Origin: Hormiphora californensis
Taxonomy: Eukaryota > Animalia > Ctenophora
NCBI GenBank assembly: GCA_020137815.1
Contig: CM035354.1
Span: 6,076,001-6,140,000, forward strand
Direction of reading: 5' to 3'
DNA length: 64,000 bases
Part shown: one piece after another, positions 17,400 through 44,953 of the stretch
Layout of the letters: every line of letters begins with the position of its first letter
Numbering within the stretch: position 1 is the first letter of the stretch
Notes under the pieces: generated by a model
What the model was told of the DNA's origin: nothing
Seen by the model: only the letters and a program-made list of their open reading frames with translations
Database searches by the model: none
Made by a program: the position numbers and the translations under genes

Positions 17400-17900
17400 T
17401 ATGCGCGGCGCGCGCTCAGAAGGCTCAAAAATATAAAATTTCAAGCAAGAAAATCGTTTTCGGCAAATGTGTTTTTTTAGTTTTTTCCCCAACCCCTTTT
17501 TGGCTTTTGCGCTTCTTATTTCTAATGATAACTGCGGTTCCTAATGAAACTTAATCACAGGTGCATTGGAAAGATCTTTAACTTCTCTTGCCAATGCACC
17601 CGGAATGAAGTCTTATCAGGAATCAGAGGGCAGAGATATCGCTGAAATTAACTTTGCAAAAAACGAGGGTGAATAGTTGAAAAATGACTTTAAAGTTTAA
17701 ATCTGGGCTGAAAAGCGCTGCCTTATCCCGCACCTATCTCTTTTCAAAGGGGTCTGCTGAAAATTCTTCGATTTTATCGATAGAGACGGGTTACTGCATC
17801 TTTTTCTCATCCTGCTCTACAGAAACCTGTGTGTCAACCTCCCTGACGAACCGCTCGATTTCTGCTCTAAACATTGAATAATGTGACACTTCGCTTTTAC
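17400..17900 (+). promoter_or_regulatory. CpG/GCGC-rich putative promoter upstream of ROGDI-SPAG16
   Basis: GCGC clusters. The 23-mer TGAAAAGCGCTGCCTTATCCCGC (17709-17731) is shared exactly with 37588-37610. Confidence 0.45.
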
Positions 17901-17926
17901 ACTAATTCCTCCCTGATCCCGCAGGT

Positions 17927-18739
17927 ATGTCTTCTGAGTTGGAATGGCTTCTGTCTGCAGAAATGCCCCTGGCATTCAGCAGCATCAGTGAACGTTTTAG
18001 TAAGTTTTCCTCGCTGCTTCAGTACTGCGAAAATGTTGAAGAGCAGGACAAGACCTCGCCTTTCGAGGAAACTATCCCGCTGAGCTCAACACTACGAGAC
18101 GACCACGTGAAGGGTCACATCAAGATGAGAGGTCCACTGATAACCAAGACAGAGCTGTCAATTGAGATCAACAACACCCCAGTACCTGTTAAAACGGTGG
18201 CGTGTATTAGAGAGGACGAGAAGACCCCGTGGAGGTTGTTTCAACTAGGTCACGCTGCTAACTACCTCTACCTCGCACGGACAAAGTGCCAAACCATTGC
18301 TGGAGGTGGTGTTAGTAATGCCAGGGAAGCTACTGATACAATCAATGAGATTTTAGATCATATCAAAAGGTGTAAACTTCAATTTTTCCTCCCCACTCCT
18401 GAAATAAACTGTCAAAATTACGCAGCATTCTGTCCTGAGCTTCCGCCTGGTTTAATCGTCAATTTTCACATCAAAGACATCAAACTAGTTCTCACCATTT
18501 CCTGTCTCAAGAACCCCCAGGACCTGCATGTGAAAGAGCGGTACTGTCTCCCTCGCAACGCCTACATAGACAGGACCATACTTCTCTCTGTTCTCTGGAT
18601 GACTGAGACATATCAGGAACTGAGCGTCCTGCAAAACGAGATCCAAATGATCCTCCAAAAACTGCGGTCCTTGCCCGAACAAACCAGTTCTCACAGCTGC
18701 AGTTGTACTACTAACACTATAGCTGCAGCTGCACAATGA
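17927..18739 (+). CDS. ROGDI: Rogdi homolog (leucine zipper; Rabconnectin/RAVE subunit), intronless
   Basis: LEWLL, DHVKGHIKMRG, WRLFQLGHAANYL and FCPELPPGLIVNFHI match Rogdi family motifs. Confidence 0.8.
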   Translation: MSSELEWLLSAEMPLAFSSISERFSKFSSLLQYCENVEEQDKTSPFEETIPLSSTLRDDHVKGHIKMRGPLITKTELSIEINNTPVPVKTVACIREDEKTPWRLFQLGHAANYLYLARTKCQTIAGGGVSNAREATDTINEILDHIKRCKLQFFLPTPEINCQNYAAFCPELPPGLIVNFHIKDIKLVLTISCLKNPQDLHVKERYCLPRNAYIDRTILLSVLWMTETYQELSVLQNEIQMILQKLRSLPEQTSSHSCSCTTNTIAAAAQ

Positions 18740-19033
18740 CGGCTGTCATGGAAGCGTGGTTTTATATACGGATTTATGTACTTTTATTATTGCAGTTAGT
18801 GTATCGACTGCTGCAAACTGACGTGTGTTTTAAAATATGTTTTTTGTGTGTGCGTGTGTGCTTTTTGACTCATCATTCTATGATTTGGGATTGTGTTTTA
18901 TTGATTTCATTTATGATTAACAAGTAAACGTTTCCTGTTTTTATTCTACCTGATTCCATTTCATCCCACCTCTTGTTATAATTTCTCGCCCAGTAATCCC
19001 TCTCGAATCCCTCTGATCCCTTCCCATAGCGCC

Positions 19034-21412
19034 ATGCCCACCCAAGACCCCATTTACTACGTGGAGAAGGTGGAGGTGGAGGACGATGGAGATAGTGATA
19101 GTTATGATGAGGTAGGACAGTTAACAAATGTGACAGAAATCGGAGATGTGACACATACAGACGGTTAGACAAACTGACAGACATTACAGCCAGGTATAAA
19201 AGGTATACAGTTGCCCTGATATCTGAATGACAAACATCAAAAAACGAAATAGGGGGCTGGGGGTAGTATGTATAATCCCGGATAGCCTGAATATCCGGCT
19301 ATCACGAAAATGTCAAATATCCGGGATATCCAGGATATCCGGGTTATCTGGGATTATTCATACCCCCTAATGAAATCTACACAAATTTATAACAACCCTT
19401 GTTTTCCTAGGTGAGGTTTGAAGATGATATCTCTGAATCTGAGACTGAGGAGGACCTCGAGACAGCTCTGAGGACAATGAAAAACAGTATAAAGGGAGAG
19501 GAGACTCCCCAGGCTGTAGTGATTCCTAAGGCTACAGTCAGTAAACGGGCTGAGGTTGTGGACGATTTTATAAGGAACTTCCTTATCAGGTGGGTTGCTC
19601 GAACCTCTGTCACCGTACTGTTATAAAGGAGGGTTAGAACATTTAAACAAGGGCTGGGTGACAGTTAGTTGTAAAGCTGCAGATTTAGTAGTGTCTTTCT
19701 TGCAATGACCTAGGGAGGCGTAATTGTTATATAATGTGTTGAGATCGTGCTCAAACCTCAACACAGTCTCTCATCATTCTAGAATATCACACCTATAATA
19801 ATACATAATTGTACCTGCAGAACTGTGTCTTTCGTTTTTCCTTTTGAATAAGTACTCAAACCCCGTGTTCACAGAATGTATTCTCACCCCACTCTCTCCC
19901 TCTTTCAGGAACAAGATGACTAGAACCCTGGAGGCGTTCCAGCGGGAATGGTTCGAGCTCCATGAGAAGGGTCAAGCAAACACCCTAGAGATGGTACCTG
20001 ACTGCTACGTTCAAATCGAGGAGCTGGAGAACAGGGTGAAGTTCCTACACAAAGAGATGGGAAAGATGAAGAAGAATGTGAATAACGCGGGAACTCAGTT
20101 CATCAAGATCCGGAAGGAGAGGGATTTCCACCGGATGCACCACAGGCGGATTGTCCAGGAGAAGGAGAAGCTATTTGCGGATATCCGCCGGTTGAAGAAG
20201 CACTACGAGAGCTATGAACCTGCCCTTTCTGAACTACGGGGCAAGTACGAGACGGCCATGAGGGAGAAGATGCTGACCAAGATTGAGTGTGAGAAGAATC
20301 TGACCAAGATCGCTAACCTCACCACAACTCTAACCAACTATGAGACAGTCCGGGGAACACTCAGTACTCCAGGAGGTCCTGTTCCAGAGATCAGCCCTGT
20401 ACCTGGAGTTGTATCAGCAGCAGCAGGGTCAATCAAGGAACACCCCTCAGACACAGTGATCCGGACCGAGGCAGCAGAGAATCCAAATATTGGAGCTAGC
20501 ATTGCAATGACGAGTCATCTGACAAGGCCTGGTGGGTTTAGGGAGACTCACTCCTTCAAGGCCCATGATATGGCCATTAGTGGGTTAGCGCTACACCCCA
20601 CTAAACCTGTTATTGCTACTGTCAGTGATGACACTAAATGGAGGTTATGGAGCATGCCAGAGGGAGAATGTGTGATGACTGGACATGGACACGACATGTG
20701 GATTGGAGGATGCGGGTTTAACCCTGAGGGGACGAGGCTGGCTACTGGATCTGGCGACACCACGGTTAAAGTTTGGGACTTTGCGGAGGGTACCTGTATG
20801 CACTCATTCTCAGACCACTCACACCCAGTTTGGGATGTGGCCTGGCATCACTCTGGCCAACTGGTTGCCTCAGCCTCCATGGATAACACCAGTAAACTGT
20901 TCGATCTAGGGTCTATGAGATGCAGAAGTACGTTCAGGGGACACAACGATAGTGTAAATAGTATCTCCTTCCTGCCCTACAGTAATGTCATTGCAACCTG
21001 CTCAGCCGACAAATCCATTATGCTATGGGACATCAGAACGGGCCTCTCTGTCCAATCCCTCCTTGGGCATGTTAATGCTATCAACTGTGTTACATTCGAT
21101 CTCTGTGGGGAGCTGCTTGCCTCATGTGATGCATATGGTGTGGTGAAGATATGGGATGTTAGGAGGGGTGGAGTGGAGGCTGGGCACTGGGATTACGAGC
21201 CCCACCCAGTTAATAGTGTTTCGTTTGATGCCAGTGGAGCCTGTTTGGCTATCAGTAGTAATGATGGTACAGTAAAGATGTTGGAGGTGGAGAAAGGTGT
21301 TGCTACGGAGTTAACTGGACATGATGATGGAGTCCAAGCGGCCCTCTTCTCCCGAGATGGAGATATGCTGATCAGTGCTAGCTCAGACTCGACCGTTAAA
21401 GTGTGGTCCTAG
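19034..21412 (+). CDS. SPAG16: Sperm-associated antigen 16 / PF20, axonemal central-pair WD40 protein
   Basis: Exons 19034-19111, 19411-19589 and 19909-21412. EVVDDFIRNFLIR, ERDFHRMHHRRIVQEK coiled coil, 7 WD40 repeats. Confidence 0.92.
19250..19369. mobile_element. Small degenerate MITE with ATCCGG subrepeats in SPAG16 intron 1
   Basis: TAGGGGG..TATGTATAATCCCGGATA versus TATCTGGGATTATTCATACCCCCTA. Confidence 0.4.
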
Positions 21413-21599
21413 GACAATGAAGTGACTGTACAGTGTACACACTATGTGTGTGTGTAAATAATATCATGTATTATAGCGTCAGATTTTCATCCAACATCGA
21501 AACAATTCCTTCTCGAGTTTGTAAGTTTGTCTGTGTGCTCGATGTCAACCTAATCAAACTCGATCCATAGCATTTCACAAGCAACGACTCGCTCTCCGT

Positions 21600-22050
21600 T
21601 TACACACACATCGCTCCAATTCGGATCTAGAGTTCTGAGTTACACGGTAGTGACGGAGCGCGCGAACACCATTCTGTTGACTGAGTCGCGCAAGCGAGTT
21701 TCCATGGAGTACAAACATTTCCCAGTGTGCGTTTGGCTTTATTTTCATGGATATTTCTTGACCAGAACAATGATACCACCTTTAAATGACAGTGAATTAA
21801 CAAAGGGGCCAACAGAAACAGGCTTGAGGGCTCAAAAAATGATCTCTCAAGAATTTGCACGCGCAAATATTGAGCCGCGCGATAAGTATATTATTCGCGC
21901 GCGTGATCCGAATAAACTTTCAAAAGATTTTTGAGATCGAGCGCGCTTTGTTCACAAAGGAAAACCAGACCGGCCGCACCACTTTTGTGCAGCTCGATCG
22001 CCCTTGCTGTACTGCCAGCCGTTGCATTTTCAAAAATATTTTGGCAAGTT
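21600..22050 (+). promoter_or_regulatory. CpG/GCGC-rich putative promoter at the head of the ZNF-to-ZNF gene run
   Basis: Dense CGCG. GCACGCGCAAATA (21857-21869) is shared with 37466-37478 and TTGAGCCGCGC (21870-21880) with 17175-17185. Confidence 0.45.
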
Positions 22051-22098
22051 ACTAAAAATATCAACAAACTGAACTCATTCACTGAAAGTAATCCAAGA

Positions 22099-23223
22099 AT
22101 GGAGCCGAATAACTTACAGGACCTCCAAGAACTGATTGTTTCTCCAGACTACCCAGAACAAGAGGAAGACCGAACATGGTCTTTTCCTGTCCAGATCTTT
22201 GTAGACGAATTTGAAAGCAGTGACCCCTTGTCAGCAGGTGTGATATTTTGTCTCCCATGATTGGTAGCCTGGTCTGAACCTTGTTTTGATTTTCAGGAAA
22301 CTTCTCGATCGTTGTACCCGAAGAAGAGACAGCTACAGCTTCCAAAAGACTGAAGGTCTCCAAAAACAAGAAATCTCGAGGAACTTCAACTAGTCATATT
22401 TGTAATATCTGTTCCTTTGAGTTCCAAGATGCTTCGATGTTTGTCAGACATCTCAAATCTCACTCAGGTGATTAAATTTCCTTCCCATCTTTTGACTTTT
22501 TGAAACCAATCTCCAGTCGTACCTTTTGCCTGTTACTATTCGATTCCTTCTGTTCCAGATGAAAGGCCCTACTCGTGTGATATCTGTCCAAAGAGTTACA
22601 AGTATCCTTGGCTACTAAAGAAACACAGAGCAATGGTCCACAGTGAAGTTCATGGTACAAACTCCGTGGTTCACACCTGCGAAACCTGCTTCAAAATCTT
22701 CCCTTGCCAGAGCGCTTTAAAAGTCCACATGAACCACCACCAAGGTACTGCACAATTCAACAAATCTCTGTTTACTCTCTTGTGTGTAGATAATACAGTG
22801 TTACACATCTCAGGTATCAAGGCATATGCGTGTACTCACGAGGGATGTAACAAAACATACACTTGGCCTAGCCAGCTGTCCGAACACATGAGAAGTCATG
22901 GTGCGGATCCGTTCATCTGCAAGACGTGCTCCAAGACATTCAAAAGCAGAAATGGCTGGAGTTACCACACAAAGAGGTGTATCGGATCAAAACTAGTGAA
23001 ATGTCCCAAGTGTGATAGAGAATTCTCAACAAGGCTCGGTCTAACATTACACCAAAGAAAGCCGTGTGAGTTTAAAATACCACACACGGACAAAGAAATG
23101 TATATCTGTGGTATTTGTAGAAAGTATAGCAGTTTGAAGCGGGATAACGTTGAAACGCACGTTTGCACTGTCCATAAAGTTGCCGAGGCGGTTGACGTGT
23201 TTATTGATAACAGTGCGACATAG
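22099..23223 (+). CDS. C2H2 zinc-finger protein (~7 fingers)
   Basis: Exons 22099-22237, 22297-22467, 22559-22744 and 22814-23223 are in phase. CxxC..HxxxH repeats. Confidence 0.85.
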
Positions 23224-23347
23224 GTTGACCAGATGTTTCGGAAGTTGTTTATATAATTTTTGTAATTCATCAATCTTTGTAACTTGTAATTTTAGTTTTT
23301 TATTTCTCATCTGTATTAAACTCACTATTCTAACACCCAATTAGATC

Positions 23348-24261
23348 ATGTCGATTGGACGAATAATTGCATCTCGTACTGCCATGTTTTGCTGTGATAT
23401 GCAGGACAAGTTCAGACCCTCAATTCAACACTTTCCCGCCATCCTATCAAATGCAAACAGACTCCTTGAAAGTGCTAAAATCCTTGATGTTCCCTTGGTT
23501 GTGACGGAGCAGTATCCAAAAGGTAACATTTAGAGAAACTCGATACATTTGTTTTTAGATCTCTTTTCGTGTAGTGAAGTGTTTGTATTGATCTCTTTTC
23601 ATCACCTAAGCCTCTTCTTGTTAGGTCTGGGTAGTACATGCTGAGGAGCTCAATATCGGACATTGCAAGATCAACTGTCCCAAGACTAAATTCAGTATGG
23701 TACTTCCTGAGGTGCAGGCCTTTCTACAGAATAACTCGAACAGACAAACTGTCGTGCTCTTCGGCATTGAGGTATGTTCATTGATTGTTTACAAAATAAA
23801 CAGCGGTATAATGTTACTAAATCAATAAATTGACAGTTGATCGTGTCCTCTAACCGGTGCTGACTCCCCCATCTTCCTAACCAGTTATTCCCCATCCTTT
23901 CAGGCCCACGTTTGTATCCAGCAGACAGCTCTTGACCTTCTGGCCCTGGGTTACAAGGTTCACATTGTCGTGGATGCTACTTCATCTAGAACTGATGTGG
24001 ACAGGTTCTTTGCATTTCAGGGTATAGTATGAACTCCAGTAACCCTAAAACCTCATTCTGTTTTATCTTAGTATTTATTGATTATTATTTAATCCACTCC
24101 ACTTTCAGCGAATGAGGCAGGCTGGTGCCCACCTAACTACCAGTGAGAGTATGATCCTGGGACTCGCTGGAGCCTCCGACCATCCCAACTTTAGGGAACT
24201 GCAGAAGATTATCAAAACCTCGGCTGCTGATACTAACCTCCTCCAGTTTTCTTGCATGTAA
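23348..24261 (+). CDS. ISOC2: Isochorismatase domain-containing protein (ISOC1/2 family); apparent +1 indels at ~23640 and ~24021
   Basis: [50 protein letters not shown]. Exons 23348-23522, 23625-23771, 23904-24021 and 24109-24261. Confidence 0.88.
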
Positions 24262-24574
24262 AAGGCGGGTAAAATAAATTATTAAACACACATTCTTTTT
24301 CTGAAAGTTTTTTATTCGAAATGTAGCTTTAACATTATTAGTTTTCTTTGTGTTCAGATTCTTTGCTTGCTTGGTTTTTCTATGTTTGTTCGTTGAAGAT
24401 TATTCTGTATTAAGGGTTTCTGTAAATGGAGTTATTGCATGAGTTTCTACTGAAAAGATGCCACATGCTTTTTTTTGGATGACAAAAAACTGCTGATTTT
24501 CTTTTACCGCTGCTAATTTTACCGCTGATTAAAGTCTACATTTTGATGTGTAACATTGTATCCTTCCATTAGCT

Positions 24575-25619
24575 ATGCTGTTAGGAGGATGATAGGATAT
24601 CATGTGTTTAGTTGTTTCCTAGTTGCCCTTCTTATCTCAACCATGTTACTATGGTGATAAACTCGTTGCCATCAACTCTCAGACAGTAAGGGAATCTCAC
24701 AATTATTACTTGTCTAGAGACACTAAAGTTCCTAACCATTGAATCGTATCTATATTATCATTTTTCCTATCACTAATACATACATCTTTATATCGTTGCA
24801 GGGTAATCTCCTAGTGCGTGCAGTGACAGATAATCTAGTGCACGGTACCATAGCGGTAGTAGCCTGGATTCTGGGGAGATATAACCATCACCTAACTAAA
24901 GAGGAGTCTGGGTTGAGAGGAGATCTGACCCGAGGGTATAGGAGTGGGTTAGCAACACACACCCTCTTATACTGGAGAGTATTATCTGTGGTGTGATAGC
25001 ATGTCTTATTGACTTGGATCACTTCGTGGCTGCATGGTCGTTTGAAATCGAGGTAAGTAGGGGTTTGGGAAGAAAGATGATCCTTTCCAAAAAGTAGAAG
25101 GGCTTTTGTGAGGTTTACTACCCTCTCCCTCAGTTTAATAATTTGCCAACCCCTTTTCTAATTCTATAATCCCCTTAGGATGCCCTGGCTGCACCGGTAA
25201 GAGGATGTTACATAACAGTGCAATAGTGATACTCTTGGCTGTGTATCATTACTACACACCCTACCTCTCACTAGTTATACTGACAGTGGCCTTCTCTACC
25301 CACCAGGTATGGAGCTAGTTGAACAATTTTATAATCAGTTTCAAATGTGTTTGTTGGTTGGTTTTACTGTACCTCGCACTGCAAATCACTTTCGTGATGC
25401 CTGGCTCAAGTTGTTTGGTTTTTGATTACATATTGTTATTTTCAGTTGAGGGATGCAGTTCGTCGTGGTCTAATGTTTCTACCTATTGGACACACGCCTC
25501 CCATCTCCTATCTCCTTTATCTCACTGCTATATCCCTGATAACTGTCACCTTCCCAAGATGTATACCTTCCTCTCAAAGGACGGTTCAGAGAGATAGTTT
25601 ACTATTGAAGGAGCTGTAA
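24575..25619 (+). CDS. TMEM267: Transmembrane protein 267; several apparent indels
   Basis: RAVTDNLVHGTIAVVAW, ACLIDLDHF and HQLRDAVRRGL motifs. Exons ~24575-24685, 24802-25052, 25179-25305 and 25446-25619. Confidence 0.8.
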
Positions 25620-25869
25620 CAAAGAAATTGTATTAGGTCTCAATGGTTATTAGTTACCCTCTTATTTTGTATGCATGTTGTTGGTTTTGTTGAGCAATGA
25701 ACCCCTTTTTTCTCTTTTTGTAAATGTCCAGATGATGTGTTTAGTTTTGAAATGATATTTATTTTCTTTGGTAGTAGAAAAGAAGTCATTAATTCTGTGT
25801 TTGTAAAATTTTCCTCCAACTCCTATGTCCGGACTGAATAGCCCGAGAAGTGTCCCACATTCCCCAGAA

Positions 25870-26877
25870 ATGTCACAAAGTGGGGATGATGTGTGTAGGA
25901 GAATTATTGATGGGGAGGCTAACCCATACCAGTGTTTTGGGCTGCCTGTTCGGTGGATTGAACCGGCTACTGTGAGAAACATGTACCTGAAAATAGCTGT
26001 GAAGGTTCATCCTGACAAGAATAGTTCTTCCCTCGCTACCAAGGCCTTTCAGGTGACTGTAACCTCACACCCTCCAGTTTCTTTATCCCCCCCCCCATAG
26101 CCTTTATCCCCTCTTTAGCTTTCCCAGTTCTCTCTTTCTTTGTTGCCCATAACCCCTGGCCTTCATCGGTCATCCCCTCGCTAACCCAGTTCCACTGCCC
26201 TTCAGGTCCTATCCGAATCATTTGAACGTCTCCACGATGAGGAAGAACAGCGCCAACTTCTCTCCTCCCTGAAAAGCGGTGGTGGTGGGGGTACTAAAAG
26301 AAAGAAGAAGAAAGAGAAAGATGTGGCTGATCTGGTGCGGCAGACCAGCTCCTGGTGGAGGAAAGATTGGGAAGAAGTGGAGTCAGAGATAAGCAGAATG
26401 ACGAACGAGTTTAAGGAACACTTGGCACGGAAACAGGAAAAACACGAACGGCAACGAGAGAAGAAAATGGAGAGAAGGGAACGGAAAAATAAGAGGATTA
26501 AAAGGAATTTGGATTATCTGAAAGAGAAATACGGGATTAGTAGTAGTGACAGCAGCGACAGTGAAGATAACCAGATTCAAGGTAGCAGCAGTAGTATCGT
26601 CATGGCGGAGATATCTCGGCAGGAGCTGGAGAAGAAAGAAGAGGAAAAGGAGGAAAAGGAAAAGGAAGAAGAGAAAATCTGTTGGTTGTGTCAGCGGAGT
26701 TTCCAATCTGGGAAACTGTTACAAGTTCACAGAGAGAAATCTCAGTTACATAAGGACAATCTTGCGAAACAAGAACAGAAAAACAATGCCAGTGCAGCTG
26801 CTGAGGCAGCGCCCTCTGGGTCTGGGGGTGGTGGCAGTAAGGGTGGGTTCAAGAACACTTTTAGTACAGTCACGTGA
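25870..26877 (+). CDS. J-domain (DnaJ class C) protein with a C-terminal RBM5/10-type C2H2 finger
   Basis: NPYQCFGL..YLKIAVKVHPDKN..ATKAFQ|VLSESFERL and CWLCQRSFQSGKLLQVHREKSQLHKDNL. Exons 25870-26052 and 26206-26877. An upstream in-frame ATG also exists at 25825. Confidence 0.8.
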
Positions 26878-27022
26878 AGAACTGGGAATATTATTTTGTT
26901 TGATGTTTTGTACAGATAACTTTGCGGTATTTAGGTGACCCATCTGGACCAATTGCAAGGTTTAGGTGACCCATTACCCCAGTAGTATAACTGACCTCCA
27001 CATAATTTGTACTAGCTGTGTT

Positions 27023-27602
27023 ATGAATAAACCGCCCACTGGAGAGGATTTGTTGACATTTTTCAAGAGTCTTGACGAGTTTACCCCGAGTCTTCCAGAC
27101 TCCCTCACCGCCCACTATCTGGCACAGGCGGGCCTACACACTTCAGACCCCCGAATTGTAAGTAATTAGGTGCATGTTAAATTGGGTGTTACCCTAATCA
27201 GGTGTATAATAAGATCTGTACTACTTTTTTTAGAACTGAAGTTGGGAAGAAAGTCACCCCTACATTTATTGCGTGTGTGTCTGAAGATATCAAATCTACT
27301 TCCTAATTAGATCCGTAGTTAGCTTGTTAGCATGAAAATTGCTATCACCAAGTAATAAGTATCCATATTTTTCTTTTTCCAACCCCTCCCTCTCCCAGAT
27401 CAGACTGGTATCCCTGGCAGCCCAGAAGTTTGTCACAGAAGTTGCAGCAGATGCGCTAGTCCACAGTACCATGAGGGGTAACCCCTCCACAGGGGGTAGC
27501 AAGAAGAGCAGGGACAAGAGGAATTATCTGACAGTGGAGGATTTACAACCTGCATTAGCTGATATGGGTGTTAATATTAAGAAACCTGCCTACTACATGT
27601 GA
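27023..27602 (+). CDS. TAF10: TFIID/SAGA subunit TAF10
   Basis: LDEFTPSLPDSLTAHYL..SDPRI|IRLVSLAAQKFV..LTVEDLQPAL..KKPAYY. Exons 27023-27157 and 27399-27602. Confidence 0.95.
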
Positions 27603-27918
27603 ACAATATGGGACAGTTCATTATGTGAAGAACATGAACATTCTGTCAGAGACAAGCATCCCTGAACATTATTGAGGCTTCCTTTTATCTTCTCTCAATG
27701 TTGTGTCGCGTGTTTGTTTGTTTGTTTATTTTTGTGTGTTTTAGTTAAACTCTTGTACAATACAGAATATAATGCAATTTCAAATGTTTCATGTATCCCC
27801 TTTTCCTGAAGACCCTAGCCCCTCTAGAGTCTCTACCCATGTCTCACAAAAGACTGCCCTCTCCGATACCAATTGACTATTATAACCCCTACTAACAACC
27901 ACACGACTACCTAGCAGA

Positions 27919-28578
27919 ATGACATACCCGCTAAAGGTGGATTATTGCGGTATCTGCTCCCTTCCTCCTGAGTACTGTGAGAATGGGCCACTTTTTGAGA
28001 AATGTAAGGAGTGGATGGAGGACAACCTACCAGATCACTATGCCAGACTTATCCTCAACAAGACACAGGTAAGAGTGGAGAAGCCCCCTCATCTCCTTGG
28101 AGAAGTTGTTATGTATCTAGCTAATTGACAGTGAAACTCCCCCACACATGACACATGACTCCCAAGCTATCTTTATCCAGAGAGAGAGAAATGCTCTAAA
28201 ATCCTGATTTCTCCCTCCTACAGGAAGAGTTAGAAGCGATGACACTGGGTAACGGTAAAAAGAAGCAGACTCGGGGTGGCAAGGCAATGAAAAACCTAAC
28301 CAAGAAACAGGACGTCCAGAAACAAGTGGCAGTAGGTCGATCAATGCGGGCCAGAAAGAAGTACGTGACCTTGATTCGAGGTCTGAAAACATGCGATATG
28401 AACTTGAAAAAGTGCAGTAAAGCATTCGGTCAGAAGTTTGCCTGTGGTTCTTCAGTAACGGGGGATGATGAGATCACAGTGCAGGGAGATGTTATTGATG
28501 ATATTAATGGACTTCATCGCTGAAGAGCTTGGTATTGATGCAGATCTTGTTGTAGATGTTGGTGATATAAAGGATTGA
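27919..28578 (+). CDS. DENR: Density-regulated protein (SUI1-domain reinitiation factor); +1 indel near 28506
   Basis: YPLKVDYCGICSLPPEYCE, KQTRGGK, FGQKFACGSSVTGDDEITVQGD. The conserved C-terminus MDFIAEELGIDADLVVDVGDIKD* is in the +1 frame. Exons 27919-28068 and 28224-28578. Confidence 0.93.
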
Positions 28579-28832
28579 AATTATATTTGTGTGTTGCTTT
28601 TTTTCAATTGTAGAAAATGGGTTTTGTAAGACTGTGTGTTGTATTTAGAGTGTGTTTCGTTGTTGAAACTTCCTTTATCAACCCTGGGGTTAGACTCGAT
28701 AATTCCGTCTTTCTTATCCACCTCTTCGAACTCCCCTAATTTAACTTCCAGTTTTCTCTCCCTACCTCTACAAACATGTTTTCCAGCTCCCCTTTATTGC
28801 TAACCCCACCATATTCCCAGTAGTTGTCCATT

Positions 28833-33597: not shown

Positions 33598-34252
33598 TCC
33601 TTGATAGAGGGGTAGATATTCTACTGAGATATGGACTCGTTGTTTTGGGACTGGTTGATTCTTTTTGAAGGACTTTGTTTTTCTTTGCTATTTTCAACTA
33701 CTATGTATCTGTGTATGTGCGAGATGTGTATTTTGGGTGTCTCTTCTTTTTTTAATTTAAATGTCCACAGAGACGGAAGGAAAATATATATGTTAATGTT
33801 TGAAATAATATTCCTGTCTTTTTGTAAAAGGCAGATGTTGAAATTAAATGTTGAGTTAGTCAAACTATAATAACTATGCGTGCTATTTTTTTGTATTTAA
33901 ATATCGGTGTTTAACTCTCCCAATCCCCCCCCCCCCCAATCCCTCTCCAGCTCCCATATATAACTCTTATTATGCTCAATCTCTCTACTGCATATCGCGG
34001 TAGGTCTACATCCCCTTGTACAATGTGTGGAGTGTGAGCCGGGCGGCGCGAACTCCGAATCCCTCGGGTATGGCGAGAACACATAGGACCCAGTGTGACC
34101 GCACTCAAATTATGTGCGCGTTAAGCGCGTTTGTTGTACGTATGCGCGTCCGCCATATTTGCCCGCCCAAACTCCACATCTCTGTCCCTGCCCCCTTCAA
34201 TTGGCTAATTAACCCAGTGACTCACCCATTTCCCTTCTCTAGCTAATGGAGA

Positions 34253-34511
34253 ATGGTCTACTTTATTGTCAGTAACGTCCCGGAGAAATACCGATCCTGT
34301 GATATGAGGCGGCATTTCAAGCAGTTCACTGAGGCGGGATGGTTTGAATGTTTCCATTATCGACACCGGCCTGAAACTACCCCTGCAACTACAGCCAACA
34401 AGGTTTGTGTGTGTGTGTGTGTATATTTAGCATACACTATATCACTGTCTTTCGTTCACACTTTTACACAACACGGTGTAACATGTTACACGTCGTCAAT
34501 TTGTTATTTGC

Positions 34512-34572
<61 letters not shown>

Positions 34573-37334
34573 GAAACCAACATGTTGCTGTGTAGTGCGT
34601 GTATTGGATGGACAGGGCGACAAGTTTCTAGATACCTACCATCACAAGATATGGTGGAGAGAGGACGAGCACGATGGTATGGAGAATAGTTTGGGTGTTG
34701 CAGTCATACTACAACGAACAAAGTCAGGTACATATGTGTGTGTTTCTTTGTAATTTCCTTCGCAACATATCCCTGATACTTTGCTATTACCCAATATATG
34801 CGAGGGTTAGAATATAAAAAGTGGCTATATATCAGTGGTCATCCGACATAATTGCCATACCTCGACGTGAAATTCGACCTGAATCTCGACCTGGAATGAG
34901 ACGCGCATTCGTAGTGAGAGAGACACAAAGACTAACGAGAGAGAAGAGTTGAAGCGCGACATCATTTTCTTACTGCGGCACATCTCTCTGATGCGCGCCT
35001 CATTCCAGGTCGAGATTCAGGTCGAAATTCACGTCGGAATATGTCGGATGACCACTGTATGACCCCATTTCTCTCTCCCAGAGCTTGGTAAATTGCTGTC
35101 CCTCCCTGAGTTGAATCCCCCTTCTGTTATGAAGGCGGGTAATGTCGGCACTCCCACTGCTGTCTTCCTAGACCTGGTTCAAAGGTGCAAACTACCCCCA
35201 CCAATTATCAAGGTTGGTGTAAAGAGAGTTCCTATACAATTCTTGAACATTCTGTATTGGGGGGGGGGGCCGGCTGAAGTTTTTGAAGTTTGAAGTTTTC
35301 CACCCTACTTTTTGAGTTTTTGAAGTTTTTGAAGTTGACTTCAAAAACTTCAAAAACTTCAAAAACTCTAAACTACTTTTATATGCTATCAGTGACTATT
35401 ATTACACTTGTTTAGGTTAGTTTCATGCTTGATACATATTGTGGCAAAGTTATCCGTCCTTGTCTGCCCTTTTTTTACCACAAATTAGGATATTTACAAT
35501 GATTCCTAGCCATGAAATCCATGGCACAATTTGGTGTAAAAAATTAAATTTTTTTGTAAAAACAGATTTCATTTTCATTCTATAACTCAAAAAGTTGCCT
35601 AGAAAGTGCTAAGAAAGTGTTTAAAAATTATGAAGTAAATTTTCAAAAATTTTTTTGGGGCCACACCCTTTTTGCCAGTTTCACAAAATGCAAATTTTTT
35701 ATTAAGGGAGTAGTGAAAAAAATATGGACACCAAAATCATCAGCGGCCTCGAGTTTATATAAGAGTTATGAAGCAACATAGGGCCTATCTCCAACGGTTT
35801 AGGAGACATGAGTTTTTGAAGTTTTTGAGGTTTTTGAAGTTTTCCACCCTAAGTTTCTCTTTGAAGTTTTTGAAGTTGACTTCAAAAACTTCAAAAACTT
35901 CAGCCGGCCCCCCCCCCCCTCTGTATTGAGCATTCCATCTGTTTCAACCTGTCAATTTTTTCAATTTTCGTTATCCAAAATTAATCGCTAAAGTCCAAAG
36001 TTGATGTCTGTGTAGTGAGGTTTACCTGTCCCCTCTCATTTCAGTAGAAGCTAAAGTTGGAGTTTCCCCGGACAATTAAAAGAAAACAGTACAGTGCTGT
36101 ACCCCCCATTGTGGGATCTTGGGAATACCCCGCCACCAGTAGTGAACAAACAACCAGTAGTAGTGAGCCATCAAGTAGTGAAGCATCAACCAGTAGCAGC
36201 GACCATTTGATCAGTAAGGAGCCCACTAAACCATCTACCAGCCAGACACCCTCCGAAGTAGAGTCTAAAGGAGATGAACCTAATGATAAGGGGAGGGGTA
36301 AGAGACGGAAGGAGGAGAGTTGGTGGAGTGAGGAAGAGAGGAAGGAAGAGCATGATGGATCAGAGGACTGGGAGAGACACGAAACATTTCACAATGATGT
36401 TGGAACTCAGGTAACTGGCGTTATTGTCTTTACTTCTCTATAACCAGAAGTTTCTGAATTATTGATGACGAGAGTCCGTATATAATTCATTAATTCATTT
36501 ATAATTCATTTATTAATTAGTAATTATGTAATTAATTCCCACAGGATCGAACAAAGGAGAAGCTGTTTGAGGAAGATATGGAGATTGTGTGGGACAAGGG
36601 CTCCTCTGGTTTGGTGTTCTACACTGATGCTAACTTCTGGGCTGACTTAGAGGGAAAAGGTATGGACAACGTCTTCAAATCATTCACATTATTCTGCTTT
36701 TCAATGTGAACCCCATTTTCTTTCCCAGTTCTCTCCTGTAACTCTACCCTCCACTTCAGACACGGATGGGTTGTGGGCTGATGAATGGGATGTTGATATG
36801 GGGGTATATGAGGGACACCATGGGGACAAGGATGCAAGGGATACCGCTGAAAAGAGAGAAAGTGAACAGTTCAGGAAGTTTGGGGATGTGGAAGAGGAAG
36901 TGGGAGATTTCGAGAGACATACCAAGGTACATAGAGAGATGAAATTAGAAAGTAGTTTCCAATACTTCACTCAGACTTTACAGTTTGACAGTAGTCTCCA
37001 CTGACCTCAACTAACAGCTAACATTCTCCAGGGTTTTGGTGGAAGAATAATGAGACAGCAAGGCTGGAGTACAGGTGACGGACTTGGCAGATCGACCATT
37101 GGAATGATTGAGCCAATCACAGCCGAGAACCCTAAACACCCCAGGGACAAGGGAGGTCTGGGGTACCGGGGAGAGAGTCTGTTAGATGCGATCAGGAAGA
37201 ATAATCCTAAACCTATCACTGAGCCTATGATAGGGAGCAAATATGATAATGTGATAGATCACAGAGACTCTGTGAGAAGGACTGAAGATCCTACAGCGAT
37301 GAAATATCGGAAGTTTGAGAAGAAACCGAAATGA
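34253..37334 (+). CDS. GPATCH3: G-patch domain-containing protein 3
   Basis: CFHYRHRPE, LPELNPPSVMKAGNVGTP, EDWERHE, WDKGSSGLVFYTDA, ADEWDVDM and the G-patch GFGGRIMRQQGW..GDGLG. Exons 34253-34402, 34574-34727, 35082-35212, 36048-36410, 36545-36659, 36760-36926 and 37032-37334. Confidence 0.92.
34833..35057. mobile_element. 225-bp hairpin MITE (CAGT...ACTG) in GPATCH3 intron 2
   Basis: CAGTGGTCATCCGACATA / TATGTCGGATGACCACTG plus a long internal inverted repeat. TAT on both flanks. Confidence 0.8.
35260..35919. mobile_element. Non-autonomous Mutator-like element with G-run termini and 9-bp TSD
   Basis: TSD TCTGTATTG (35251-35259, 35920-35928). TIR GGGG..GCCGGCTGAAGTTTTTGAAG. TTGAAGTTT subrepeats. 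Confidence 0.85.
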
Positions 37335-37419
37335 GTGGGTTGTGTAAATGTTTATGTTTGTTTGTTTATCAATTGGAATTGGATTTATTGAATTCTTGAC
37401 CTCTAATGAGTTGAATATT

Positions 37420-37740
37420 ATCTTTTGGTACGCAAAAACCGGGGAAATCTCGGGACTGAAAATTGGCACGCGCAAATACATTTTGCGCAGGGCAAAAATT
37501 CCGCTGCGCGCTTCAAATTATTGAAAATAATTTTATTTCCGACACAAAAAAATCGCGTCTGCCAACAAAAATTTTCCGTTCGCTGGTTGAAAAGCGCTGC
37601 CTTATCCCGCGCTGCGCGGGGGCCAGCAACGTTTGCCAAGTTCGCTGGTGGCGTTTTTGCTCGTTTTAGCGTTATCAAAAGGCGTTCCTGTATCCGTTTT
37701 AATCGAAATTAAGCCGAGATACATATCCATAGTTGCTACC
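37420..37740 (+). promoter_or_regulatory. CpG/GCGC-rich putative promoter upstream of PPP1R7
   Basis: Shares a 23-mer with the 17.7-kb island and a 13-mer with the 21.9-kb island. Confidence 0.45.
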
Positions 37741-37758
37741 ACTAATTTTTAGCGTATC

Positions 37759-38661
37759 ATGGGCGAAGAGGCGGAACCAGAAGTTGAGGAACTTTTCATT
37801 GATCCAGCTGCAGAATCTCTGGAATTTATTCACAAACGACTAACTGAGATTCCCGATGTTTCTCGCTGTAAAGACTGTGTCCGACTCGTGTGCAGACGGA
37901 ATAAGATTAAGCGTGTTCAGCATCTTGATAATCTCGTGAAGCTTGAGGAACTCGATTTCAATGATAACGAGATTACTGGAATTGAAAACATCGAACATTT
38001 GGAAAACCTTGTTGAGCTTGATTTCAGTTACAATGTGATACCAGAAATTCGATGTATGGAGAAACTCACCAACCTCACTCAGTTGTACATGGCTCAGAAC
38101 TCGATTGAGAAGATCGAGGGAATATCAACTCTCGTCAATTTGAAATGTCTTGAACTTGGTGCTAACAGGATACGTGCTATTGAAAACTTGGATCCTTTGG
38201 TGAATCTTGAGAAATTGTTCCTTGGAAAAAACAAGATTACTCAGATTGTCGGGTTGGAAAATCTGGTGAACCTGAAATGCCTTGATATCCAGGCTAACAG
38301 GATAACCAAAATCGAGAATTTGGAAAACAATCTCAAGTTAGAAGAACTTTATCTCAGTCATAACGGAATTGAGAAGATCGAGAATCTTGATATCAATACA
38401 GAGTTGTACACCATCGACTTATCGCATAACCAGATTGAAGTTTTGGAAAATCTCGGCTCACTTTCTGCGATTATGGAATTTTGGATGAACGACAACAAAA
38501 TTGCCTCATTTGAAGAGTTGAAAAAGTTGGAACACATGAAAGAGCTGGAGACGGTTTATTTTGAGAGAAATCCCATTTCAACAGACACAATGTACCGTAA
38601 AAAGATACAGCTATATTTGCCTGGTATCAAACAAATTGATGCAACTTACGTCAGAGTGTAA
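37759..38661 (+). CDS. PPP1R7: Protein phosphatase 1 regulatory subunit 7 (sds22), intronless LRR protein
   Basis: SDS22-type LRRs (LELGANRIRAIENL, LFLGKNKIT, LYLSHNGIEKIE) and the LRRcap LETVYFERNPI..YRKKI..LPGIKQIDAT. Confidence 0.93.
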   Translation: MGEEAEPEVEELFIDPAAESLEFIHKRLTEIPDVSRCKDCVRLVCRRNKIKRVQHLDNLVKLEELDFNDNEITGIENIEHLENLVELDFSYNVIPEIRCMEKLTNLTQLYMAQNSIEKIEGISTLVNLKCLELGANRIRAIENLDPLVNLEKLFLGKNKITQIVGLENLVNLKCLDIQANRITKIENLENNLKLEELYLSHNGIEKIENLDINTELYTIDLSHNQIEVLENLGSLSAIMEFWMNDNKIASFEELKKLEHMKELETVYFERNPISTDTMYRKKIQLYLPGIKQIDATYVRV

Positions 38662-38795
38662 CTCTCCTACAATTTTTTGTTTCTCTCTTTCTCCGTGTGT
38701 GTTGTACAGCTCTGTTTCGAAAATGTGTGTTTCCTCGTTGCTTCTCGTGCGTGTTCTCATTTGAGCACATACATTTTCCAATCTCCCACCTTTTT

Positions 38796-39337: not shown

Positions 39338-39445
39338 TTTTTCCTGTTTTTACCCTTTTCTATAATTGAACATCTCCTTTCTCCTCAACAGATGTACCTA
39401 ACACTTTTCTCTTTTCGTGTAGCTAAGCAGAGCAGGCAAAATGTA

Positions 39446-41165
39446 ATGCAGTCTGGCAACCGTCACATGAGAGACCAGCGGGACTCAGACCTTGTGCGCA
39501 GTCTCAAATCGCCCATGGTCTTCTCTGCACAGATGGGCTCCCAACGGGGGGCTCCAAATCCCAAACTGATGACGATCACACACCAGGGAAAACAGCAGAG
39601 TGCCATTTATAATAGCAGGTAAAATCTTTCTCTCTCTCCGTGATTTGGTAGACTAGGTAACCATTAAACGACCTAGTAAGGGGACCATTTATATGTTATA
39701 GAACTTTCTCTCTCTCTCTCTCTTGTTTCTCACCCCCCCCCCCCCTCCGATAATTTCTCGTTTTATAATCCCTGACATCATATCTCTCCCTAGGTTTCCC
39801 AATCCGAGTATATTTACTGCTAAGAGTTCCCCGCCAACACACGAAGGTGCAAGTGCGTTCAGTGTTCCCCGGTCATCTGCTTTTAACCGAGTAGCGGCCC
39901 TTCAAACCCAGGCTGGGAGGAGGAAAGAAGAGATGGTGGAGCCCAAATCTCGGGGTGGACAGGTTGTGTGGCAACAAGCCAGCTCCAACGAGCAGGTTTA
40001 TAGGATGGCTCACATACAGCAACAACCGGGTAGTAACGGCAGCTCCATCATCCAGATCCCTCAAAATCTCCCTCCACACCACCCCTCCTTCTACATGGAC
40101 CCTCCTAACGTCTCCACTCCCTTCTTCAACTTCAACTCCCAGAACGTCCCTCTAGTAATCAACTCTAATATCAATGGATACCTCTCATCCCGGCCGTCAA
40201 TTCTACGGAAAGTCGCCAAACCTCCCCCTCCCACAGCTGCAGCTCCCCACCATCCCCCACACCACCACGATCACAATGGGTCCTATGGAGAGGTGTTCAA
40301 GGGATTAAAACACGGCAGATCCTCCATGCACGGGGGCGTCTCAACCTCAGTCTCATCAGGCGCAGCAACAGCAGCCCCTGTCTCCAATGACCCCTATGTG
40401 TTCTGCGATTCTCCCCGGAAGAAACCCAGAAAACAGGTGGTGATAGCACACGAGGACTCGTACGCAAGTAATGTTCCTGAGGTGATAGTACCCGTGGGTG
40501 GTATAAAACAACAACAACACCCAGTGGTCCAACAAGAGGATACCATCTCCTTCTATACTCCGTGTCGCCGGATGTCCCTCCTTCCCGCGTCCTCCAAAAT
40601 ACCGGGACGGGATATAAACCACTTTGAGCGGTACCGGGATGTTAAAGTGCGGAAGAAGAGGAAATTCAACGAGCCCGTTCCGGAGGCGAGTTATGTTGCG
40701 TCCCAAGGTTGGCGGCTGATCCACCTAAAAAGTCAGCTGGAGGAACTGACGGGGACGCAGCGGGAAAACAAGGCAAAGATTTGTGAGTTCAGAGATTACT
40801 TCTGTTCCCTCGAGATAGAAGAAAAGAAAATCGGGGGAGGAGGAGGTGGTGGTGGTTCATCATCAGATTCAATCGGAGAGTTGGTAACCAAGATAACGCA
40901 CTGTTGCCATAACAACGGCTCACAAATGAAGCAGGTCATGGGGGCTCTGGACAAGCTGGTGAATAGTCACAAACCTCGTGTACTAGAACTGGTCAGGGAG
41001 TTAAAGGATCGTAACACAAGTTCAGTGGTGGTATCAGCAGCCACAACGGCAGCTAACACCTCAATATCAACACCAGTTGTACCTGGAGTAACGAGAAGAA
41101 AGAGGACACCGCCCCCAAAGAAGGAAGTTAGCAGCAAAAAGAAAAGCAGAAAAAGGAAAACCTGA
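39446..41165 (+). CDS. SAP130: Sin3A-associated protein 130 (HDAC complex subunit), short form
   Basis: RPSILRK, SPRKKPRKQ, HFERYRDVKV and GWRLIHLKSQL are SAP130 C-terminal motifs. Exons 39446-39618 and 39794-41165. Alternative ATG at 39392. Confidence 0.8.
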
Positions 41166-42151
41166 GACACTATTTGAGTGTGAATGAATACATCTATATA
41201 AGATCTGAGAGAGAGAGTTTGTGTGTGTGATTGTGTGATTGTACAGACCTATATGTTGCACTGCTTCCCCCAGTGTGTCACCTGCACGGGACAGAGAGGG
41301 ACAGATATTATATGGGACAGACAATAAAGTGAGTGACAATAACAAAAAGGACAGACTGACAGACGAAATGGTGGTAATACTACTTAGGTGGATATAGGGG
41401 GACAGAGTGAAGATATGGAGAAATATACAACATACCAAATATATATATATTGAGGTTAACGCACACACACACAACATTTTAACTCTTAAATGGTGGACGG
41501 ACTCTTTTTAAGATTGATTTAAATACGTTATGTGTGTGAAGTGTGTGTCTTTTAACTTGTCCGTCTGAAGAGTGAGAGAGAGAGGTGAGTTAGTGTGTGA
41601 TTTTTGAGTGGGCTAGTGTTTGAGATAAGAGTTCAACTGACGGACAGGAAGAGAAGTTTATTTTATTTAGGTCCGGGATATAAAATGAATTAAAATGTTA
41701 GCCAGGGTTAAATAATATATATTGGTAGGGCCCTAAAATGAGATGCCAGCCGCCGGAAGAATCAACAAATCAAAATTGTTAAAAAGTATGAGTAAGAGAG
41801 AAAATAAAGTGAGAGAGAAAGCGCGAAAAGAGATTTATTGTCCGACTTAAACCAATCCTATTACAAGTTATTATACGATTTGTTTTTCTTTGTTTAAAAG
41901 TAGAGATATCTATATCTGGGCCCGGGGCCGGCTCCAAAACAATACACTTTTGTCGACCTCTTGCAAATCGATAAGGTTACCAAATCTACACCCTAAAAAG
42001 GTTTAAATGCCCCCTTCTTTACCGTCTATGTTCACATATTTCCCTCAACACGTTTCCCCTCCTCGCACCATCTCCACAATTTCTTTCCCTGTAACTACTC
42101 TACCTCTCTCTCACATCAATTCCCTCTCTAACATCGCTCTGATTGTATAAG

Positions 42152-44953
42152 ATGTCGGGTGTTAGAAACAACCTACAAGAAGAGTACAGCAGGAGACTGA
42201 ACGAGGCGACCTCTAACCTCCTCTCTAACTATGGTGCAATTGTGTCCGCCCTGAGGATCGATGATGATTCCAAGTTGACTAGTACCAACCAATCATACCA
42301 AGATAATTATCAGGTAATTAATAATCAGAGTGGGGTTGACATGGTCCCCGCAGGAATTGTTATTAGGGGAGGTAAAACTTTGTTTAGGAAATACAGTATT
42401 CTATTTTATTTCACCCTCTGCACATGTGGCGACTGTAGTTGTCCCCCGCGAGTTTCTTTCTCGGTCGTTGTGCCGGTTGTGCTAGTTTATTCTCCCTCCC
42501 TTTCTCTCTATCTATCTCCCTCACATGTGCGGCCAAACTGAATTATGTTTGTGTGTGCGGCCAACACGGAAGAACAATGCGTCTTCTGCAAGCCTGTGCT
42601 AACAAATCGCTGCCTTTTTCTACCCCACTAGGCAAAAAGCAGCTGTACCTTCTCGAGAATTCTACCATTTCACCCCTCAGGCTACCAGCACACTCTTCAC
42701 CCCAGGCCTACTCTTATACACCGCCCCTCAGGGTCCAATAACAATAATATCATGTTTACAGCTGCAGCTTCCCAATGACATCACCCTCGACCTCAGGCTA
42801 ATGTCCGGTGCACGAACATACTAAAGGCAGGGGAGTCCCTACTAGACCTGATATCTGACCTGAAGGAGGCACTGATTTTCAAAGATTTTCCCGCCATCAA
42901 CTCTTCCCTAACTGCACAAAAGGTATAATGAGAAATACAATCAGAGGGAGCAATCAAAAACTGGATTGCGTTAAAGAGAGGGGGTGCTACGGGTTGAGAA
43001 AAAGATGGGAGATAGGGAGCTAAGAGTGAGAAAGAGAAGGGAAGGGGTGAAAATCAAAATGCATAGCTAAGAGCTATCTCTCTTTACCCGCATCTTGCTT
43101 TACTAAGAAAAGTTTCAAACATTAAATTGAATACTGCCCCCTCTTTGTATCCATCTTGACATCTTATTGTTGGCAGTTTTAATTTATTTGTTCTGCGGTA
43201 TGATAGTTCTCCGGAGCTCCTTGCCCTCGATTTCTTGGGGAAGGGGTTTTAGAGAGAGAAAGATAAAGTAAAAAAAGAGTTCCTAACTTCTACATCTATC
43301 CAAAACAACCCTCCAATTTCGAATTCTCTCCCTCCATAAAACAGTTTCTAATTCTATCCCTCCATTAAAGGGATACTGACATATTCAAATCGACCATCTC
43401 AAATTTTAGTAAAACATTGCCCAATCACATCATCTGAGAGAATAAATACATTGTGTCGAAGTCCGAGCTCTCTACTCCCTCTACTTCTCAAGATATAGGG
43501 TCCCAAATATTAACACCCACTAATTGGTTATGGTAAGAGGAGGAGACCAGCATTACAGATTACAGGTAAACACGAGCCTGTTTATATGTCATTATCTCAG
43601 CTAATACACATGCGATTTTGACCGTGTTTTTTCTAAAACCTTTAAGACCACTTCTAGTTTCTGTTTTTGGTTTCCATTTGTCTCTAGACTTGTCATAAAT
43701 AGATAGAACTATAACTAAGCAAGACGGTGATTTTTTTTGAAATGTATGCCTTCTTAGAACAATATTATCATGGTATACAGTAACTAATGTCAATCAGACT
43801 TGGCTATACTTCCTCAATTTTACATACAAATTGTTAGTATTTAGCCCATAGTCAATAACATAGTCAATAGTTATCAACTATTCAGCCCTCAAATGAATAT
43901 TGTATCCTAGGAGAGTATAAACTGAAAAATTTAGCCAAATAATTGGTATAAAAGGCAAAACCACTAAACCCGACTAATTTTGATACGTTGAATCACGTGA
44001 GCAACTTTGGCAAGCGCCCAGGGGTGGAGAAAGTGACCTAATTGAACATAATCGGGTCTAATTGATCGTAACTGTAACTTATCGCATGAAAACGTTATCA
44101 ATTCATGTGAGAGCACTATCATCACTAATTTTGATACGCTGAATCACGTAAGCGGCTTTTCCAAGCCGTCAGAGGTGAAGAAAGTGTCCTAATTGAGCAT
44201 AATTTAGTCTAATTGGCGATAATTGCATTTTTCAACTGGAAATGCTGAAAGATCGCATGTGGGGCACTTTACACACTAATTTTGATACACTGAATCACGT
44301 GAGCAACTTTTCCAAGTCCTCAGAGGTCGGCAAAGTGCCCTAATTGCCCATAATTGGGTCTAATTGACCTTACTCCAGTTTACCTCAAACTGCACTGTTT
44401 ACTTGTTTATTTACTGATTTTTTTGGTCATTCTGATACAGATAATAAGAAAATACTAAAAATTTAAAACATTTCTAACTTCCAGAAAAAAATCCGGTCAA
44501 AATCGTGCATGTGAAAGTTGAGATATTGACAGATAAACAGACTCGTGTTTACATGTAATTTGCAATAAAACTCTCCCCCTATACCATAACCAATTACGAA
44601 GTGCTAAAAGGTGGGGCCCTATATCTTGAGAACGAGAGGGAGTAGAGAGTTCGCACTTCGACTCATCCTATTTTTATCTCCCAACCAGTTACCACACCCA
44701 GGATCGTTGAAAAAGTCAAACAATTTTGAATATGTCAGTATCCCTTTAAACAGTTCCCCCCCCCCCTCCAGTTTCTAATTCTCTCCCTCCATTAAACAGT
44801 TTCTAATCCCCCTGCTCCAGTTTCTAATTCCCTCCCTCCGTTCAGGTACTGATGGAGCAGAACAGGATACGAATTAACAAGGAGTGTATCACTGTTAAGG
44901 AGGAAATGAGCCCGTTCCTTCATGAAATTGAGTTGGAGTATTACAAATCCTGA
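42152..44953 (+). CDS. MED22: Mediator subunit 22
   Basis: YSRRL..NY, VRCTNILKAGESLLDLISDLKEALIFKDFPAIN, LHEIELEYYKS*. Exons 42152-42313, 42797-42922 and 44846-44953. Confidence 0.9.
43369..44745. mobile_element. Non-autonomous Kolobok-like element in MED22 intron 2
   Basis: TTAA|AGGGATACTGACATATTCAAA ... TTTGAATATGTCAGTATCCCT|TTAA. Three internal ~150-bp tandem units at ~43975-44370. Confidence 0.88.

Follow-up and report, generated by a model that had tools for sequence, protein, structure and literature searches.

Operons whose messages are separated by spliced leader (SL) trans-splicing have been described in several animal groups, and a 64-kb stretch of the genome of the ctenophore Hormiphora californensis (contig C5:6,076,001-6,140,000; hereafter the window, in whose coordinates positions are given) carries a run of genes that resembles them. 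In Caenorhabditis elegans operons, which are resolved by SL2- and SL1-type leaders, unrelated and largely housekeeping genes lie on the same strand with spacers of about 100-300 nucleotides (nt), a U-rich segment lies between the upstream 3' end and the acceptor, and the leader joins the mRNA a few nt ahead of the start codon. The ctenophore run shares this layout, but it belongs to another phylum in which trans-splicing is probably of independent origin, no specialised downstream leader is known there, and the one junction seen (at the TAF10 gene) carries the major SL. Tunicates such as Ciona and Oikopleura use one SL for both monocistronic and operon genes, and their intercistronic regions are very short or nearly absent. 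The spacer between the zinc-finger gene ZNF1 and ISOC2 is comparable, with ATTAAA 28 nt before the acceptor AG, whereas the tunicate operons have been validated by cDNA and 5'-end data and the present run has a single junction. Chaetognaths and Hydra provide further cases of SL trans-splicing with operon-like clusters outside nematodes and tunicates (PMC12460157, PMC3273482); these come with transcript evidence.

In ctenophores, SL trans-splicing is known but operons are not. The SL of H. californensis is 44 nt long and is found on at least 56% of Iso-Seq reads and mRNAs, and more than half of the transcripts in the annotation start with AG (PMC8527503). That study by Schultz et al. (2021) concerns the same genome, the same leader, and the same AG acceptors as are considered here, but says nothing about operons, about the distances between genes, or about runs of genes on one strand (PMC8527503). 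A 2021 paper describing SLIDR and SLOPPR notes the lack of any reported ctenophore operon (PMC7986045), and among the papers that could be searched on ctenophores, Mnemiopsis, and Hormiphora none reports operons or polycistronic transcription. A preliminary description of the window had suggested that operons are undocumented in this animal, and the literature searched, including the SLIDR/SLOPPR paper, agrees (PMC7986045).

It is credible, and we lean slightly toward the view, that the core of this run is an SL-resolved operon with read-through transcription. The best-supported unit consists of ZNF1, ISOC2, TMEM267, DnaJ, TAF10, DENR, and ZNF-A, occupies 22.1-30.1 kb, and has spacers of 124-316 nt. 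With ZNF-B and ZNF-C, which may also belong to it, the unit would have nine genes over 22.1-33.6 kb. The short same-strand gaps by which operons are recognized are present, with seven successive genes lying 124-316 nt apart. Gene starts and ends were rebuilt from the sequence, and the recomputed stop-to-ATG distances are those of the preliminary description at six spacers (294, 124, 313, 145, 316, and 254 nt); the seventh, between TMEM267 and DnaJ, had been given as 250 nt and is 272 nt when measured from the TAG at 25595-97. The families identified along the window with Pfam, which was run exon by exon, are mutually unrelated: Rogdi, WD40, isochorismatase, DnaJ, TAF10, DENR, C2H2, G-patch, LRR, Med22 (weak), and LANC-like. 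The genes of the run are ordinary ctenophore housekeeping and zinc-finger genes.

The spacers themselves have a recurring two-part layout. Eight tight spacers were examined, seven in the window and one between a zf-met gene and a PSMB3 gene in the upstream flank. All eight begin with a T/G-rich part containing motifs such as TTTTGT and TGTGTT and continue with a C-rich, G-poor part, as had been proposed. The second part is 60-130 nt long, often has CTAAC 10-25 nt before the AG, and resembles the 3' part of local cis introns. Judged from its letters, this layout looks like that of an intercistronic region in an SL-resolved operon. The upstream mRNA would be cut and polyadenylated in the U/GU-rich first part, and the next mRNA would be capped by the SL at the acceptor that closes the C-rich second part. 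The operon reading is strongest for ZNF1-ISOC2 and DnaJ-TAF10, because spacers of only 124 and 145 nt must hold a 3' untranslated region (UTR), a poly(A) site, and an acceptor. These two spacers also bear on the alternative that every gene is its own transcription unit, with a compact promoter in the 3' UTR, last exon, or intron of its upstream neighbor and a short outron that SL trans-splicing takes off. The common orientation and dense packing would then reflect genome compaction and not shared transcripts. We regard this alternative as possible if somewhat doubtful. It can draw on the trans-splicing of at least 56% of mRNAs genome-wide, for which no operons were reported (PMC8527503), but it requires promoters in these two spacers, which must already hold a 3' UTR, a poly(A) site, and a full acceptor.

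On the favored explanation, each mRNA of these genes would receive its 5' end when the SL is trans-spliced to an acceptor 0-12 nt ahead of the ATG. The AG-to-ATG distances listed in the preliminary description were reproduced in every case: ROGDI 2, SPAG16 4, ISOC2 3, TMEM267 2, DnaJ 2, TAF10 7, DENR 1, ZNF-A 9, ZNF-B 11, PPP1R7 6, and MED22 0 nt. The AG of ROGDI lies at 17923-24 and that of the PPP1R7-like gene at 37751-52, and the AG of MED22 abuts the ATG. An AG also occurs within 12 nt upstream of 65% of all 2152 ATGs in the window, and therefore an AG by itself is weak evidence. A more demanding acceptor score, composed of pyrimidine tract, poverty in G, YAG, and a branch-point-like motif (YTRAY), was ranked against background ATGs of the window. 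Among 16 gene starts, 14 fall in the top 0.6-20% of the background and 8 of these in the top 3%, with a combined p value by Fisher's method of about 1e-7 (an order of magnitude, calculated by hand). ROGDI ranks in the top 1.8%, ZNF1 is weak and reaches only the top 20%, DnaJ is also weak, and an AG within 12 nt is missing from the starts of ZNF-C and LANCL. Most acceptor AGs are preceded, at 10-25 nt, by a CTAAC-like motif.

Evidence that these acceptors receive the SL comes from the genome and from RNA. Genomic copies were counted over 110,691,255 bases in 45 contigs, where the published SL occurs about 820 times (822 copies of its 3' 17-mer versus 48 of a reversed control). The SL end is followed directly by GT in 96 copies versus 0 in the control. 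Ten copies were read, and most continue into unrelated sequence. At C13:3,189,668-3,195,354 there are seven copies with a GT donor, six of which are plus-strand sites spaced mostly about 745 nt apart, and this cluster is probably a tandem array of true SL RNA genes.

The RNA consists of assembled contigs from two runs. One (X1) is an environmental metatranscriptome whose contigs are 91-99% like the window; the other (X2) matched in just two partial stretches, 90-95% alike, from which nothing can be learned. Coding differences between X1 and the window amount to 3-9% and fall mostly at third codon positions, and X1 thus derives not from the sequenced animal but from its own species or a close relative. 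A 199-nt X1 contig fits the window from 27014 to 27157, in TAF10 exon 1, and resumes at 27399, across a GT..AG intron. Its first 19 letters match nothing in the window and are positions 24-42 of the SL, whose final AG overlaps the genomic AG at 27014-15. The leader is thus joined exactly at the predicted TAF10 acceptor, and the expectation of a common leader of non-local origin at a predicted AG is borne out for this one gene. The TAF10 mRNA therefore begins at 27016, which leaves 7 nt to its ATG and 138 nt back to the stop codon of DnaJ, and the 3' UTR and poly(A) site of DnaJ must share those 138 nt with the branch point and pyrimidine tract of TAF10. This junction, the one downstream junction seen, carries the end of the major SL and not a specialized second leader. 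The X1 contigs place cis introns in TMEM267 (25051-25176), DnaJ (about 26050-26203), and TAF10 (27158-27398), and carry the ISOC2 3' UTR to at least 24326. Another candidate leader, 21 loose letters before 24827 on a TMEM267 contig, was set aside as probably clipped divergent exon sequence.

These findings also bear on a different explanation, in which the AGs are ordinary cis acceptors of introns in 5' UTRs, with non-coding first exons further upstream and no shared leader. A trans acceptor and a cis 3' splice site cannot be told apart by sequence alone, and Schultz et al. observed gene clusters that seemingly share a 5' exon (PMC8527503). However, they ascribed such exons to the mapping of SL reads onto whichever SL copy lies nearest (PMC8527503), the TAF10 contig bears the SL and not local genomic sequence, and the window has no SL copy even when three mismatches are allowed, which excludes a local shared exon. 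We consider the cis explanation very unlikely. The reading of the AGs as SL acceptors is supported, by RNA at TAF10 and by predicted acceptor signals elsewhere, and is already known biology for the species.

If the core run is an operon, transcription would start in a few CpG-rich regions, at about 17.3-17.9, 21.4-22.1, 33.9-34.25, and 37.3-37.75 kb, and would run on from each such head through several genes. ROGDI, ZNF1, the G-patch gene, PPP1R7, and LANCL each have a CpG-rich non-coding region upstream. Within the stretch covered by the run, GCGCGC occurs only in the CpG-rich heads and in one intronic inverted repeat. CpG content was compared only upstream of gene starts, because transposons and some exons are CpG-rich too, and the last 400 nt were taken before loosely spaced starts. 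The 8 tight spacers have 0.7-3.4 CpG per 100 nt, compared with 1.75-7.25 ahead of the 10 loosely spaced starts (one-sided Mann-Whitney test, p = 0.001). CpG is just as scarce in the longer spacers, of 901 nt before ZNF-B and 527 nt before ZNF-C, as in the tight ones, which fits the nine-gene unit that had been proposed at the outset. The earlier remark that the spacers leave little room for promoters is likewise supported, and CpG-rich candidate promoter regions lie at the proposed unit heads only. From its composition, the region before ZNF1 (head B) is a candidate promoter of the long unit. Independent units for each gene find some support here in the ROGDI-SPAG16 spacer, which is not CpG-poor. 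GCGC occurs once in that spacer and is absent from the remaining seven tight spacers, of which six lie within the core.

A second sequence feature of the heads is a bipartite element of about 60 nt. Heads A and D have an exact 23-mer in common, and its 22-mer core has 670 genomic copies versus 0 in the control. Twelve copies were read, and all have the same plan: box A with GAAAAGCGCTGCCTTATCCCGC, a variable GC-rich linker, and box B ending GCAACGTTTGCCAA, set in flanks that are unrelated between copies. Coding open reading frames (ORFs) in the same orientation begin 110-310 nt downstream of several copies, and the copy at C1:7,438,496 precedes, by about 60 nt, an SL copy with a GT donor at 7,438,584. 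By its structure and placement, the element is a plausible candidate for a promoter element. At these two heads it lies about 100-200 nt from the acceptor, a distance that would suffice for separate promoters. Against such promoters, box A is in no tight spacer, and GCGC is in only one of them. No copy of box A or of the bipartite element was found in any tight or internal spacer; since at most about 670 genes carry the element, its absence there says little. A broader proposal, that ctenophore genomes are widely organized in SL-resolved operons with CpG-rich promoter heads, some with the bipartite element, is tentative and on the whole unlikely. Were it true, a basal animal lineage would use polycistronic transcription as one of its main modes of gene expression.

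The orientation of the genes is a further point in favor of an SL-resolved operon. The claim that all host genes are on the plus strand holds for the window once transposons are set aside, since its minus strand has no sizeable ORFs other than those for a reverse transcriptase and a multi-copy FLYWCH protein. The strand context was sampled over the window and 200 kb upstream (264 kb in all), which is descriptive and too small for a genome-wide statistic. A run of at least 22 successive non-transposon genes on the plus strand begins with a zf-met gene located 21.7 kb ahead of the window and goes on to where the window ends; in the flank, the run comprises this gene, PSMB3, a DIS3-like gene, and a DUF2465 gene. 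Were each gene an independent unit with random orientation, a run of this length would have p of about 5e-7, before allowing for the post hoc choice of window. On the other hand, the same 200 kb contain host genes on both strands (DSPc and KH on minus; MAP65-like, CLPTM1, and UDPGT on plus), so that co-orientation is not universal, as independent units would have it.

Choice of window also underlies the possibility that the pattern is due to chance or annotation, with misplaced gene starts and a plus-strand run picked post hoc from many windows. The window was indeed chosen by a reader, the starts of TMEM267 and ZNF-C are uncertain, and the assembly has frameshifts. But Pfam matches begin near the proposed N termini of ROGDI, ISOC2, DnaJ, and DENR, and the TAF10 start is fixed by RNA. 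Moreover, the same architecture recurs in the unselected flank, where the zf-met gene and a PSMB3-like proteasome subunit gene form a tight plus-strand pair (C5:6,054,276-6,057,419) with a 277-nt gap, a C-rich tract, and an AG that precedes the ATG by 6 nt. The next gene, DIS3-like, lies 681 nt beyond the PSMB3-like gene. An artefact of this kind is hardly credible.

Several observations weigh against an SL-resolved operon and should temper it. SL trans-splicing is pervasive in the species, and thus the acceptors do not separate operons from single genes. RNA supports only 1 of about 10 predicted junctions, through a contig from the 3-9% divergent X1 source, and no RNA contig crosses a spacer among the X1 matches listed (10 of 17 pieces). 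AATAAA or ATTAAA is present in only two tight spacers, ZNF1-ISOC2 being one, and because most spacers lack these canonical signals the 3'-end sites are not placed. CpG richness is no proven mark of promoters here, AT-rich 3' UTRs lower CpG content in any event, and the numbers compared are small. Finally, given the element-to-acceptor distances at heads A and D, a compact promoter could fit into spacers of 270-316 nt.

If the core run is nonetheless an operon, it would be among the first in a phylum that is perhaps the sister group of all other animals. It would bear on whether trans-splicing evolves in the service of operons or vice versa, and on gene regulation and genome annotation in ctenophores, including transcription starts, promoters, and fused or split gene models. 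The locus offers a concrete test case, with a run of 7-9 genes, an RNA-verified junction 138 nt past the upstream stop codon, and defined candidate promoter regions. The coordinates of its features are collected in Table 1.

Table 1. Genes, spacers, and candidate promoter heads of the Hormiphora californensis gene run (window coordinates; o/e, observed/expected)
Feature	Position	Strand	Details
Head A, before ROGDI (candidate)	17300..17926	+	CpG block 17301-17550; GCGCGC 17408/17410; box A 17709-17732
ROGDI	17927..18739	+	single exon; Pfam Rogdi_lz, E 2e-21
Spacer ROGDI to SPAG16-like	18740..19033	+	294 nt; acceptor AG 19028-29; CpG 3.4/100 nt, status ambiguous
SPAG16-like WD40 gene	19034..21412	+	Pfam WD40, 7 repeats
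Head B, before ZNF1 (candidate)	21413..22098	+	37 CpG, o/e 1.28; no other genomic copy
ZNF1, C2H2 zinc-finger gene, first of the long run	22099..23223	+	Pfam zf-C2H2
Spacer ZNF1 to ISOC2	23224..23347	+	124 nt; ATTAAA 23315, CTAAC, AG 23343-44; CpG 0.8/100 nt
ISOC2 (isochorismatase domain)	23348..24261	+	Pfam PF00857; RNA contigs over 24102-24326
Spacer ISOC2 to TMEM267-like	24262..24574	+	313 nt; acceptor AG 24571-72
TMEM267-like gene	24575..25597	+	stop TAG 25595-97; frameshifted in assembly
Spacer TMEM267 to DnaJ	25598..25869	+	272 nt; acceptor AG 25866-67, weak
DnaJ-domain gene	25870..26877	+	Pfam DnaJ; C-terminal zinc-finger-like motif
Spacer DnaJ to TAF10	26878..27022	+	145 nt; trans-splice acceptor AG 27014-15, RNA-confirmed
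TAF10	27023..27602	+	Pfam TAF10, E 3e-20
Spacer TAF10 to DENR	27603..27918	+	316 nt; CTAAC, then AG 27913-14 and AG 27916-17
DENR	27919..28578	+	Pfam DENR_N and SUI1; one apparent frameshift near 28510
Spacer DENR to ZNF-A	28579..28832	+	254 nt; CTAAC, then AG 28819-20 and AG 28822-23
ZNF-A	28833..30137	+	single exon; Pfam C2H2 zinc fingers
Spacer ZNF-A to ZNF-B	30138..31038	+	901 nt; CpG-poor; acceptor AG 31026-27
ZNF-B, tandem paralogue of ZNF-A	31039..31956	+	blocks 83-91% identical
ZNF-C, last gene of proposed nine-gene unit	32484..33597	+	Pfam zinc fingers
Head C, before G-patch gene (candidate)	33900..34252	+	5.25 CpG/100 nt; 4 GCGC
G-patch gene	34253..37334	+	Pfam G-patch
Head D, before PPP1R7 (candidate)	37335..37758	+	7.25 CpG/100 nt, o/e 1.66; full bipartite element 37588-37645
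PPP1R7-like LRR gene	37759..38661	+	single exon; Pfam LRR_4 and LRR_9
Gene with no Pfam family	39446..41165	+	784-nt spacer upstream
MED22	42152..44953	+	Pfam Med22, weak, E 0.0016

Certain gene models in the run carry apparent frameshifts relative to the expected proteins: three in the TMEM267-like gene (24589-25597), one in DENR, and three in ZNF-C (33350-33560). The identity of TMEM267 is a reading of its translation only, and its exon 2 has no Pfam match. As a correction to the preliminary description, the ATG at 24575 opens just a five-codon frame in the assembly. X1 RNA contigs have an additional A after 24966 and an additional G after 25202, and by reading, the added A puts TMEM267 back in frame. 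The frameshifts of all three genes are assembly indels or a null haplotype.

A copy search of the whole genome found the run genes and head B to be single-copy, with ZNF-B and short intronic repeats as the only extra matches. No SL-headed retrocopies or paralogues of the run genes, which could have served as a fossil record of 5' ends, were found in the genome. Rfam and tRNA scans of the window gave no match. For the 500-amino-acid exon of the SPAG16-like gene, no ctenophore relative, and hence no synteny, was found in metagenome contigs, where the best match is 41% identical.

Some features of the surrounding DNA can be recorded separately. The spacer after the PPP1R7-like gene contains a 542-nt insertion (38796-39337) that resembles a miniature inverted-repeat transposable element and has perfect 19-nt terminal inverted repeats; minus this insertion, the spacer would be about 243 nt. 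At the start of the gene that follows, ATGTAATG at 39441-39448 forms an upstream ORF of one codon, with a stop codon that shares letters with the main ATG. The FLYWCH zinc-finger ORF on the minus strand (57951-58670) has 24 genomic matches of up to 98% identity, several with stop codons, and is a transposon-borne or domesticated multi-copy gene. Two large foldbacks, at 2650-4750 and 47300-51800, are head-to-head arrays of a satellite of about 29 nt. Both are bordered by the same CpG-rich arms of about 600 nt, and the second is split by another element.

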